Shown here one piece after another: positions 61,401-64,000 of a stretch of 64,000 bases of DNA; positions within the stretch are counted from its first letter, which is position 1; every line of letters begins with the position of its first letter. Position numbers and translations under genes: made by a program. Source of the stretch: Ascidiella aspersa (Eukaryota); NCBI GenBank assembly GCA_963924565.1, contig OZ004608.1, positions 18,104,001 through 18,168,000 of the forward strand. The letters are read 5' to 3'. The notes beneath the pieces were generated by a model that was not told the origin of the DNA, did no database searches, and worked only from the letters and a program-made list of their open reading frames with translations.

Positions 61401-62825
61401 TAACGTTCACGAATGACAAGTATATATCAAACATTGTGAGAAAAACTGAACTTAATATAGGCGCCACCTTTGTTCCTCGTTTGAACTTTTAAGCCGTCAT
61501 AGTGCACAAATTGATTCACCTATCAAACCAGAAATACTTTGAGTTTGCAAAGGAGCGTGACATTTTTATTGTGTTTAAGGCCCGTGACGACCACATGTCG
61601 ACGCCCATACACGAGGCAGCGAAGCACGGCCACGCTGACATATTGCGCCTTGTTTTGTCCAACGCCAACAACTACTCCAAACTTCTGGATTGCAAAGACG
61701 ACAACGGGTGTACACCGCTAATCCTTGCTTGCAGGGATGGATTTAACGAGGTCTGTCCATAATTCAATCACATGTATTATAACTGATTTTTTCTTTATTT
61801 ATGAGATGATTTTAGGCCACCGCACGATAAAATGCTGGACGTTAATTCGAGAGGTTTCATTAGGCATCCATCACAGCAAAATATTTGTTGTATCTTTAAA
61901 ATTCAGGGTAACACGTTCCACATTTTTAAGGCCGCCGCCGTACTCCTGGAATTTGCCAGAAAAGTAAACTGTAGCGAGGTCGTATCTCGTTTGTTGGATA
62001 AGAACAACGACCTTGATACACCCATACACGTAGCTACTGAAAGTGGGTCGGTAGCTACCGTTCGCTTGTTGCTCGAAACATGGGACAAAGAAGTTGTACT
62101 GCTCACCAACCGCTACGATGAATTAGCAAGTAAGTTGCTTTAAATACAGAAACCTTAAAATAATAATATATTACAGCTAATCTTCGTACCAGCGAATTTT
62201 TGTGATGAATACTCTATGTTCAGAAGACCTTCCGAAATACATAGACATCAGACAAAAGCACGGAAACACCCCTCTTCACTTGGTTGCTCACCACGGAAGC
62301 TTGGAGACCCTCACGACGCTTTGTAACGGCAAACCTAACATCGAAGCACAAAACAATAACCAGGAAACGGCGCTGTGGATTGCAGCTCAAAGGAACAACT
62401 TAAATATTGCGGAAGCCCTGTTAAACATGCGAGTAACATTTTTACTTTAAACTGTAACTAAATGGGCACTGCCTGTAGTTGTTTTGAACGGGATAAGAAT
62501 GTATTTTGTAGTGAAACCGTTTACAGTGAGAAAGATTGAATTCAAATATTTGCAACTTTTTACGTAATGATATACAATTAAAGCGGCGATAGGTAGCATT
62601 TTTAATCGCTTTAGTCATTATTGATTTAAATTTACACACAGAGGTGCCAATATGGAAATGCGTAACGTGAGCGGAATGACGTCATTGATGGTGGCCTGTA
62701 GAGATGGCCATCCAGAAATTGTTAAACTTCTAATTGCCCGTGGTGCCAATACCAGTTGCATTGATGCAAAGGAAAGAAATTGCTGTATATTGGCGGCCGC
62801 CGAAGGAAGAACTGACATATTAAAA
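58417..62825 (+). CDS. Multi-ankyrin-repeat protein, probably a TRPA1-like channel N-terminus (incomplete; continues beyond the window, next acceptor near 63965)
   Basis: Exons 58417-58635, 59912-60035, 60441-60638, 61580-61750, 61931-62129, 62224-62428, 62642-62825 with consistent phases. Serial ankyrin motifs SPLHVAV, QPVHYAA, TPLHYAS, TPIHEAA, TPLILAC, TPIHVAT, TPLHLVA, TALWIAA, TSLMVAC. The ankyrin call is firm; the TRPA assignment is inferred because no TM domain is in the window. Confidence 0.8.
59439..59816. mobile_element. hAT-type MITE, 378 bp
   Basis: TIR CAGGGCTGCTGAGTCG / CGACACCGCAACCCTG; TSD gtttcctg/gttgcctg; subterminal GAGTCG/GACTCG repeats. Confidence 0.82.
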
Positions 62826-63061
62826 GTAATTAAATGTGCTTTTAATTGTCTATATTTCTAGAAAATATGATGTTTGTACCGAGACCTAAATCTAAATATT
62901 TTTGTAATGTTTTTTTTTGCAAGATTACCACTTTTCATGCATCACAACAGTGGGTATAGCAAACTCAACCTAAAACTATTTAATAGTACACCGAAAAGCC
63001 ATCGCAGACTCGCCGAAGCTTTCGATCTATGATGCAAGCAGAGCAAGCCAGAAAAACAACT

Positions 63062-63136
63062 CGCCTGCAGTGAGGTTCGAACTCACGACCTCCGGTCAAG
63101 CCGGGACCGTCGCTCTACCAACTGAGCTATGCAGGC
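63062..63136 (-). ncRNA. Second full tRNA-like copy (inverted unit)
   Basis: 74-nt body identical to 63651-63724; discriminator G instead of C; followed by the same T5 terminator. Confidence 0.8.
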
Positions 63137-63338
63137 TCAGAGAGGGGCGAGTCGAGAAACAACCATGCGCCAATACTTGCACATTTTGTTAGTACAAGCA
63201 ACTTCACACTGGGGAATCAACAGTCCGTATCAATCAATGAAAGACACACACAAACATATGTGTTTAATAACATCTGTGATCTAGCCCCTCGGAAGTTGCT
63301 TTATGACCAACGATTACGGCTTCCGGCTTTTGACGGCT

Positions 63339-63377
63339 TTTGACCGGAGGTCGTGAGTTCGAACCTCACTGCAGGCC
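63339..63377 (+). pseudogene. 3' half of a third tRNA-like copy, truncated at the inversion junction
   Basis: TTGACCGGAGGTCGTGAGTTCGAACCTCACTGCAGGCC, preceded by a scrambled GGCTTTTGAC duplication. Confidence 0.8.
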
Positions 63378-63650
63378 AGTTGTTTTTCTGGCTTGCTCTG
63401 CTTGCATCATAGATCGACAGATTCGGCGAGTCTGCGATGGCTTTTCGGTGTACTATTGATACGGAAGCCGTAATCGTTGGTCATAAAGCAACTTCCGAGG
63501 GGCTAGATCACAGATGTTATTAAACACATATGTTTGTGTGTGTCTTTCATTGATTGATACGGACTGTTGATCCCCCAGTGTGATGTTGCTTGTACTAACA
63601 AAATGTGCAAATATTGGCGCATGGTTGTTTCTCGACTCGCTCCTCTCTGA

Positions 63651-63725
63651 GCCTGCATAGCTCAGTTGGTAGAGCGACGGTCCCGGCTTGACCGGAGGTC
63701 GTGAGTTCGAACCTCACTGCAGGCC
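63651..63725 (+). ncRNA. tRNA-like Pol III gene with non-canonical anticodon arm (undetermined isotype)
   Basis: Acceptor GCCTGCA/TGCAGGC, D stem GCTC/GAGC with A box TAGCTCAGTTGG, anticodon stem CGGTC/GACCG with loop CCGGCTT, T arm GTGAG-TTCGAAC-CTCAC, T5 terminator at 63731-63735. Confidence 0.8.
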
Positions 63726-64000
63726 AGTTGTTTTTCTGGCTTGCTCTGCTTGCATCATAGATCGACAGATTCGACGAGTCTGCGATGGCTTTTCGGTGTA
63801 CTATTGATACGGAAGCCGTAATCGTTGGTCATAAAGCAACTTCCGAGGGGCTAGATCACAGATGTTATTAAACACATATGTTTGTCTGTGTCTTTCATTA
63901 AAACTATTTAAGTTTCCTAAGTTTCTGCAAACGTTAGTACTATTTTTACTCTCCATTTTTACCAGAACAGCCTGAGAGGAGGAACAAGGTTAAGTCAATA

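Follow-up and report, generated by a model that had tools for sequence, protein, structure and literature searches.

Frangieh et al. 2024 (PMC11167929) reported that a purified Penelope-like protein acts on both DNA strands, which it cuts and extends, and that it favors AT-rich targets. It initiates reverse transcription internally, at two sites of a multi-copy RNA, and these sites are non-homologous to the target. The two internal start sites explain the optional "tail" of genomic Penelope copies, the RNA required by the reverse transcriptase (RT) sits just 3' of these sites, and the hammerhead is dispensable for the activity of the protein (PMC11167929). A type I hammerhead in each repeat is the defining feature of the non-LTR (metazoan) retrozymes, which are non-autonomous partners of Penelope-like elements (PMC7229834; bioRxiv 10.64898/2026.07.22.740005). 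Sm-alpha of Schistosoma is described in PMC2770079 as SINE-like and high-copy, with a tRNAscan-SE prediction of tRNA-Gln (tRNA-Gln-TTG); the same paper discusses Sm-alpha and Sj-alpha, citing Ferbeyre 1998 and Laha 2000.

The DNA analyzed here is a stretch of 64,000 nucleotides (the window), near the end of which a sequence-only reading had described a tRNA-like gene carried in a tandem repeat. To our knowledge, it is the hammerhead ribozyme by which non-autonomous Penelope partners have been recognized until now. tRNA-derived heads are the norm for SINEs, where they are 5' terminal and without a following terminator, and where the pairing of the cloverleaf has usually been lost. The Sm-alpha unit is ~330 bp long and occurs both in tandem and dispersed.

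A single two-armed insertion in the window

Our repeat search showed that the sequence at 62982-63899 is a single insertion of 918 bp, consisting of an inverted arm, a 14-nt junction, and 1.6 direct units. The direct units have the period of 348 bp given in the sequence-only reading, but the repeat is not a plain tandem. The target-site duplication AAAACTATTT, 10-12 bp in length, lies on both sides of the insertion; the AA that follows its left copy can be assigned either to the duplication or to the element. TRF did not report the 348-bp period of the window insertion. In the numbering used below, unit position 1 is window base 63462, and the tRNA occupies unit positions 190-264. The parts of the insertion are as follows.

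62972-62981, no strand: left target-site duplication AAAACTATTT; it recurs at 63900-63911, and other insertions are duplicated likewise
62982-63325, minus strand: inverted arm of 344 nt, running from unit position 344 back to 1; its complementarity to 63462-63805 is 98%
63062-63136, minus strand: tRNA-like module within the inverted arm, discriminator G (ARAGORN; Rfam RF00005, 55.5 bits)
63326-63339, no strand: 14-nt junction GCTTTTGACGGCTT between the arms (sequence reading; repeat map of the arms)
63340-63899, plus strand: direct arm, 1.6 units of 348 bp (direct repeat with a spacing of 348; BLAST map)
63340-63377, plus strand: innermost part of the direct arm, a tRNA-like copy 5'-truncated to tRNA positions 38-75 (348-bp repeat register)
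63621-63650, plus strand: 30-nt leader ATGGTTGTTTCTCGACTCGCTCCTCTCTGA; 29 of 30 positions identical in the 141-bp sister family
63651-63725, plus strand: tRNA-like module, a 74-nt cloverleaf plus discriminator C (sequence reading, ARAGORN, Rfam, and structure counts)
63731-63735, plus strand: T5 run 3' of the tRNA-like module, of terminator type for this genome
63900-63909, no strand: right target-site duplication AAAACTATTT (+AA) (sequence reading)

The outer end of the inverted arm (62982-63325) is the "short" cDNA start site (..GGTGTACTATT), and the direct arm (63340-63899), which runs through unit positions 227-348, then 1-348, and then 1-90, stops at the "long" one (..GTCTTTCATT). The junction GCTTTTGACGGCTT between them resembles the anticodon-loop region, as if copied with a stutter. 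Six changes separate the inverted arm (62982-63325) from the family consensus. One variant, at unit position 106, is common to both arms, which therefore derive from the same template. Over 904 bp, the window copies carry nine private changes relative to the consensus, and the 186 nt of tRNA body are free of them. An earlier comparison of the two full copies had found no substitutions in the tRNA body and seven in the rest of the unit; recomputed against the consensus, this contrast is not significant (p ~0.13 for 0 of 9 private changes falling in the tRNA body).

An open frame of 61 codons with an ankyrin-repeat-like translation (..GMTSLMVACRDGHPEIVKLLIARGANTS..) lies at 62652-62834 on the plus strand. 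Because the insertion is found ~140 bp downstream of this frame, it is probably intronic.

A tRNA-shaped module with a predicted non-decoding loop

All four stems of the module at 63651-63725 are Watson-Crick paired and its A and B boxes intact, in line with the sequence-only reading. The acceptor stem is GCCTGCA/TGCAGGC (7/7 paired), the D stem GCTC/GAGC (4/4), the anticodon stem CGGTC/GACCG (5/5), and the T stem GTGAG/CTCAC (5/5). The A box is TAGCTCAGTTGG and the B box GTTCGAACC, and the bases engaged in tertiary contacts (U8, G18 G19, and T54 T55 C56) are kept. A T5 run starts 6 nt downstream of the module, where it had been placed before, with five bases between the discriminator and the run (63731-63735). 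ARAGORN called a "tRNA-Ala(GGC)" both at 63651-63725 on the plus strand and at 63062-63136 on the minus strand. Comparison with the Rfam tRNA model RF00005 by Infernal upheld the likeness, with 54.0 bits for the former and 55.5 bits for the latter at a gathering score of 29; genuine tRNAs of this genome reach 61-77 bits.

In a decoding tRNA the 7-nt anticodon loop contains U33 and purine 37, position 26 is a single base, and the variable loop measures 4-5 nt. The anticodon arm of the module reads G-A-CGGTC-CCGGCTT-GACCG-GAGGTC. Infernal aligned the module over the whole tRNA model with a 9-nt anticodon loop, a 2-nt insertion with respect to the model, and in this reading the loop is CCCGGCUUG. 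Alternatively, the loop of the arm can be taken as the 7 nt CCGGCUU, which places C33 and U37 in it and leaves an additional base on either side of the stem. Both the Infernal insertion and the direct reading of the sequence agree with the earlier description of an enlarged anticodon arm that lacks U33 and R37. The module has the stems, A and B boxes, tertiary contacts, and T-run terminator of a decoding tRNA, and its loop does not show the combination of 7-nt length, U33, purine 37, and standard spacing. Judged from its sequence, the cloverleaf is a predicted non-decoding tRNA mimic. The corresponding loop in the 141-bp sister family is CCGGUAU, with C33 and A37.

In most of the lineages sampled, a run of at least four T residues is found no more than 10 nt downstream of the cloverleaf; three old, decayed copies retain just T3. 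Genuine tRNA genes of this genome terminate mostly on T4-T6, and their upstream regions are unlike the 30-nt leader. Among the Glu, Lys, Arg, Cys, and Asp genes sampled in a search for the parent tRNA, Lys-CTT resembles the module in its D and T arms. For pairing between leader and cloverleaf, RNAalifold gave no more than a small hairpin of local extent and one additional pair, A(-1):U73. We also noted a self-complementary CCGG in the anticodon loop (63683-63686), which recurs in the 3' stem strand GACCGG (63693-63696). The loop CCGG is conserved across all lineages, and the repeat might allow an alternative hairpin or loop-loop pairing between RNAs.

Abundance and age of the 348-bp family

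Our search of the 308-Mb genome returned at least 178 scored matches to the 348-bp unit (2497 first-look candidates), with 98-100% identity and on all large contigs. A pattern anchored across the anticodon arm has 1398 exact matches genome-wide. The element has no ORF, and its arrays range from 0.3 to 12 units. One sequencing run has the properties of whole-genome DNA from the same organism. As a rough guide only, the unit is covered in it several thousand times as deeply as the flanks, and the tRNA part more deeply still. The family is a warning to annotators of this genome, since thousands of "tRNA-Ala/Thr" calls derive from a transposon.

The 34 best units differ from one another by ~0.5 bases, and this near-identity indicates a very recent burst. 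Arrays are internally uniform; where the unit measures 349 or 350 bp, the variant is confined to one array. The mean number of differences per unit was 0.4 within and 0.55 between arrays, a comparison without power, because hardly any of the best-scoring copies depart from the consensus.

The exact family consensus was also present in two sequencing runs labeled as other organisms (X3 and X4), where it forms 378-nt (348+30) cyclic contigs at a depth of 12-13. The unique flanks of the window left no trace in X3 and X4. The consensus in these runs might come from traces of this species' DNA, from a close relative, or from RNA.

Older relatives and selection on the fold

An older sister family has a unit of 141 bp (e.g. 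L031:1276-1669), composed of the leader (29/30 identical), a cloverleaf with the loop CCGGTAT, and the trailer TAGTTTTATGAACAGG, followed by the next unit. When the older relatives were compared with the 348-bp unit by BLAST, only its positions ~129/160 to 273 gave a match, which correspond to the leader, the tRNA, and the T-run. On the evidence of these alignments, the 348-bp and 141-bp families have only leader, cloverleaf, and T-run in common. Older composite arrays (L033:1542-1807 and L036:1382-1650) contain, in alternation, cloverleaf modules with the trailer type AGTTGTTTTTCTAGCC.. and with the type TAGTTTTA.GAACAGG; these arrays may be dimeric ancestors of the 348-bp unit.

Lineages differ in the acceptor stem at pairs 6:67 and 7:66. 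We counted the forms genome-wide with exact-anchor patterns.

GCCTGCA / TGCAGGC: pairs C-G and A-U, 890 copies
GCCTGTG / TGCAGGC: pairs U.G and G.U, 69 copies
GCCTGTG / CACAGGC: pairs U-A and G-C, 46 copies
GCCTGCA / CACAGGC: two mismatches, 3 copies

Paired forms are found in 890, 69, and 46 copies and the doubly mismatched form in 3, which is the genome-wide pattern of compensatory change expected from the proposal that this is a multicopy tRNA mimic kept for its structure; at both pairs the exchange is compensatory via G.U. The wobble form (U.G/G.U) occurs with both types of anticodon loop and hence looks like an intermediate or ancestor of both Watson-Crick forms. None of the four acceptor-stem substitutions involves CpG. 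The compensatory changes represent few evolutionary events, as the copies share descent, and the decay of dead copies is uninformative on selection.

Across 20 distinct copies, 93.7% of cells are paired, compared with 30-43% in slid controls. In this set, pair 6:67 is CG in 8 copies, UA in 8, and UG in 3, and pair 7:66 is GC in 11, AU in 6, and GU in 2. None of 500 shuffles reached the covariation score, and RNAalifold independently recovered the acceptor, D, and T stems. Four substitutions that fall exactly on two pairs, via G.U, fit selection for a folded RNA and are unneeded by a DNA promoter. These comparisons indicate that the pairing of the cloverleaf is kept by selection in the amplifying lineages.

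Structure of the insertions

To describe how the arrays insert, we mapped 14 independent loci by BLAST. At 11 of the 14, direct repeats of 7-12 bp surround the entire array, arms included, and these target duplications are mostly AT-rich (e.g. AAAAATGGAG, AAAATTATATTG, AAAATTTAGATC, AAAACAGAA, TCTGTTGTTGTT, and TACATATCA). Since whole arrays lie inside target duplications, they were made at insertion and not by satellite-type amplification, and the suggestion that the unit is the seed of a tRNA-derived satellite is not supported.

The 3' ends of the arms fall either at unit positions 88-98 (..GTCTTTCATT, at times followed by CATT or AATT) or at 339-345 (..GGTGTACTATT). The two sites are 94 nt apart, and after both of them GATACGGA comes next in the unit. 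Arrays that end at one site run through the other without a seam, so neither site is the end of the template RNA. Poly(A) or LINE-type tails were absent from the mapped array ends. The 5' ends are scattered; approximately 3 of 30 lie in a 19-nt interval at or just upstream of tRNA position +1, where 1.6 would be expected, and the mapped loci show no excess of 5' ends at unit position 190, the start of the tRNA. Many copies are truncated inside the tRNA, as at 63340.

Two-armed insertions include, besides the one in the window (62982-63899), L002, L004, L013, L015, and L020. Wherever both outer ends of a two-armed insertion could be read, one arm ended at each site (~90 and ~344), in 9 of 9 cases; at the site usage of single-armed copies the chance of such a split is <0.001. 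This suggests that the two RT start sites are apportioned between the two DNA strands. In L1 twin priming the arms are contiguous pieces of the element, whereas in the two-armed insertions of the 348-bp family their contents overlap.

Neither of the fixed 3' ends coincides with a tRNA boundary (RNase P or Z site), and Mauriceville-type priming by tRNA-CCA was dropped on these grounds. With its fixed ends away from RNase P and Z sites, the tRNA neither defines the ends of the element nor primes its cDNA.

A candidate Penelope-like partner in the same genome

GIY-YIG matches are numerous in this genome, together with many further RT matches, and a protein atlas places a young Penelope-like family among RT/GIY-YIG clusters. 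This family encodes RVT_1 and GIY-YIG on a single ORF (Pfam), and its copies are 98-99% identical, so the genome that carries the 348-bp family also holds an autonomous RT+GIY-YIG element. The copies are 5'-truncated and occur as partial tandems and head-to-head pairs (L062-L067, e.g. G000:C1:15310224-15313478). They end in ..TCTCTATTT, and in tandem copies AGAATTAGGACAAATACGG.. comes next.

One Penelope family was compared with the 348-bp unit over its 3' 3 kb. BLAST found no similarity between them, and they have in common only an end of the ..CTATT type and, close to the junction, the hexamer ATACGG. Rfam searches of the 3' 3 kb of the young family detected neither a hammerhead nor a tRNA. 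As the sampled Penelope RNA is without a tRNA-like structure, a cloverleaf handle, if real, was not copied from that element. A Penelope-like element is nevertheless the probable partner, assigned by style and mechanism of insertion alone.

The 348-bp family itself displays partial tandems, an inverted 5'-truncated arm, and variable target duplications, as well as the "tail" signature of two alternative internal cDNA starts. In our analysis its insertion pattern agrees with each of the points established for the purified protein (PMC11167929). Autonomous Penelope-like elements (PMC11167929; PMC8557442) likewise show partial tandems, a head-to-head inverted arm, and AT-rich variable duplications, with two 3' ends, an internal cDNA start, and no poly(A). 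The "tail", however, is 94 nt in the 348-bp family and 30-40 nt in the autonomous elements, and where Penelope elements have a pLTR and a hammerhead, the 348-bp family has a tRNA-like module and no ORF.

Ribozyme search and comparison with retrozymes and SINEs

At E values up to 1-5, Rfam detected no ribozyme in the window, in consensus-like arrays, in the 141-bp family, or in the Penelope loci; for the window and the consensus-like copies this holds for either strand. The permissive search returned only the tRNA, plus microRNA artifacts caused by the inverted arms. A CTGATGA is present in the family consensus at unit positions 103-109, 13 nt after the long start site, and is mutated to CTGTTGA in the window copy (63564-63570). 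GAAA is absent from the whole plus strand of the consensus, and no helix II follows the CTGATGA. Without GAAA on the plus strand a hammerhead core cannot form, and the lone CTGATGA is probably a chance match or a relic.

The 348-bp family resembles retrozymes in its non-coding unit (~150-450 bp in retrozymes), in its dispersed copies that range from dimers to large multimers without LTRs or poly(A), in the strong self-pairing of its unit RNA (-128.9 kcal/mol, z = -5.5), and in residing in a genome that bears Penelope-like elements. It differs in that its tandem repeats do not carry the type I hammerhead that every retrozyme repeat has and contain instead a tRNA-shaped module with a leader and a T-run. 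Like Sm-alpha, it is a high-copy retroposon family predicted as tRNA genes; Sm-alpha, though, carries an active hammerhead. The tRNA part of Sm-alpha is classed as tRNA-Gln-TTG, whereas the 348-bp family has a non-canonical loop (C33, no R37, extra bases) and shows compensatory evolution.

The unit resembles tRNA-derived SINE heads and mascRNA-type processing signals in that its A and B boxes belong to a stretch of tRNA origin within a non-coding element. In SINEs the tRNA head is at the 5' end and transcripts start there; here the tRNA is at unit positions 190-264. Nor does the unit have the 3' tail and the freedom from internal terminators of a SINE, as it ends in ..GTCTTTCATT or ..GGTGTACTATT and a T5 follows the tRNA. 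Unlike SINE heads, the module is internal, is followed by T4-T5, and has kept its pairing. From its sequence, the fold is plausibly tRNA-like enough for recognition by RNase P or Z; a difference is that the ends of the 348-bp element are off the RNase P or Z sites.

Discussion

We put the probability at about 0.75 that the tRNA look-alike is the conserved core of a non-coding, non-autonomous retroelement family that is mobilized in the manner of Penelope and whose fold is under selection. The core would consist of the 30-nt leader, the cloverleaf, and the short T-run. In the mechanism that we propose, a multi-unit (or circular) plus-sense RNA would be copied by a Penelope-like RT/GIY-YIG endonuclease. 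Reverse transcription would initiate inside the RNA at ~90 and ~344, each with GATACGGA next, and the cDNA would reach varying lengths, to a maximum of 12 units. Extension would often take place at both of the cut DNA ends, giving two outward-facing arms as in the window, and the insertions would end up between AT-rich target duplications of 7-12 bp.

The cloverleaf would act in this process as a folded RNA, not as a decoding tRNA. Together with the leader it would form a cis-acting handle, 50-100 nt 3' of the cDNA start, that recruits the RT or an RNP or helps RNA traffic. We prefer a cis-acting handle because Penelope RT needs RNA just 3' of its start sites, and this is where the core sits: leader and cloverleaf are located 3' of the start site by 50 nt in the 141-bp family and by 100 nt in the 348-bp family. 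Such a handle, if true, would explain why only multi-unit copies act as sources. The retention of a terminator-type T-run suggests a small Pol III transcript, and by its sequence the module may also be a Pol III gene giving a small RNA. The handle model leaves the kept T4-T5 run unexplained; such a run sits better with a small Pol III RNA made independently than with a long template.

If the family were an ordinary tRNA-derived SINE, the cloverleaf would be an internal Pol III promoter only, and transcripts from the tRNA would be copied by a LINE. The A and B boxes are indeed intact and invariant across lineages, and tRNA-derived heads are normal for SINEs. Sm-alpha (PMC2770079) offers a precedent. 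We nonetheless consider this explanation unlikely, given a tRNA in mid-unit without a pile-up of 5' ends at tRNA +1 (~3/30 against 1.6 expected), a terminator-type T-run after the tRNA in the sampled lineages, 12-unit arrays that would require Pol III to read through 12 terminators, ends without poly(A) or a LINE-type tail, and compensatory acceptor-stem changes of which a DNA promoter has no need. Since the 5' ends bear no mark of a Pol III start and each unit brings its own terminator, we read the cloverleaf as more than a SINE promoter.

An RNA circle of retrozyme type, in which a host tRNA endonuclease active at the enlarged anticodon loop and RtcB ligase replace the hammerhead, reduce multi-unit transcripts to unit length, and circularize them, and in which an RT rolling round the circle produces the arrays, would account for a 348-nt unit in tandem, TSD-flanked arrays like those of metazoan non-LTR retrozymes (PMC7229834). 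The strong self-pairing of the unit RNA (-128.9 kcal/mol, z = -5.5), the uniformity of the arrays with 349/350-bp variants confined to single arrays, the internal cDNA starts that a circular template would require, and an anticodon loop that is the single abnormal part of the cloverleaf all point the same way. Against these, Rfam revealed no self-cleaving ribozyme among its families, with E values up to 5 admitted, and no bulge-helix-bulge motif is evident in the anticodon arm; the 378-nt (348+30) cyclic contigs in two runs are also expected from tandem DNA. Moreover, the linear multi-unit transcript of the published Penelope model (PMC11167929) accounts for the same facts, and we regard circles as distinctly unlikely. 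It is very improbable that the modules are free-standing tRNA-mimic ncRNA genes with a cellular role of their own and that the 270-bp flank is a passenger or satellite spacer. The A and B boxes, the tertiary-contact bases, the T4-T5 terminator at the usual distance for this genome, and the maintained stem pairing would suit such genes. However, the copies behave as mobile DNA, being dispersed, target-duplicated, 5'-truncated, and often inverted; thousands of near-identical copies reflect a very recent burst and not conserved host genes; many are cut off inside the tRNA, e.g. at 63340; and the non-tRNA parts have defined ends that are constant between insertions. The free-standing gene family that the sequence-only reading had proposed gives way to a module that is an internal part of a mobile retroelement unit.

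Read as the core of a retroelement mobilized in Penelope style, the module belongs to a very young and successful family that has the full Penelope insertion signature without a ribozyme and whose sole conserved part is tRNA-shaped. The family is a natural test case for the template needs of Penelope RT, and it lends genomic support to the in vitro findings that both DNA strands are extended and that RT starts at two internal sites.

More speculatively, and in our estimate doubtful, the host-tRNA mimic formed by leader and cloverleaf may have taken over the job of the pLTR/hammerhead, either as a handle for the RT or a host protein or through processing at the anticodon loop into circles. As a handle, it would be bound by the telomerase-related Penelope RT or by a host tRNA-binding protein; in the case of circles, host tRNA enzymes would act on the enlarged anticodon loop of the multi-unit RNA. 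If true, this would constitute a ribozyme-free, tRNA-based route to retrozyme-like propagation.

Finally, our sampling of tRNA genes revealed a very large cluster of genuine tRNAs at G000:C3:31.37-31.62 Mb (L051-L055), consisting mostly of Glu-TTC, Glu-CTC, and Lys-TTT genes spaced 0.6-2.6 kb apart. ARAGORN made 237 calls in nine sampled loci (~58 kb), most of them from this C3 cluster and many of them slightly decayed copies. The Arg, Cys, Asp, and Lys-CTT calls came from four small loci outside the cluster.
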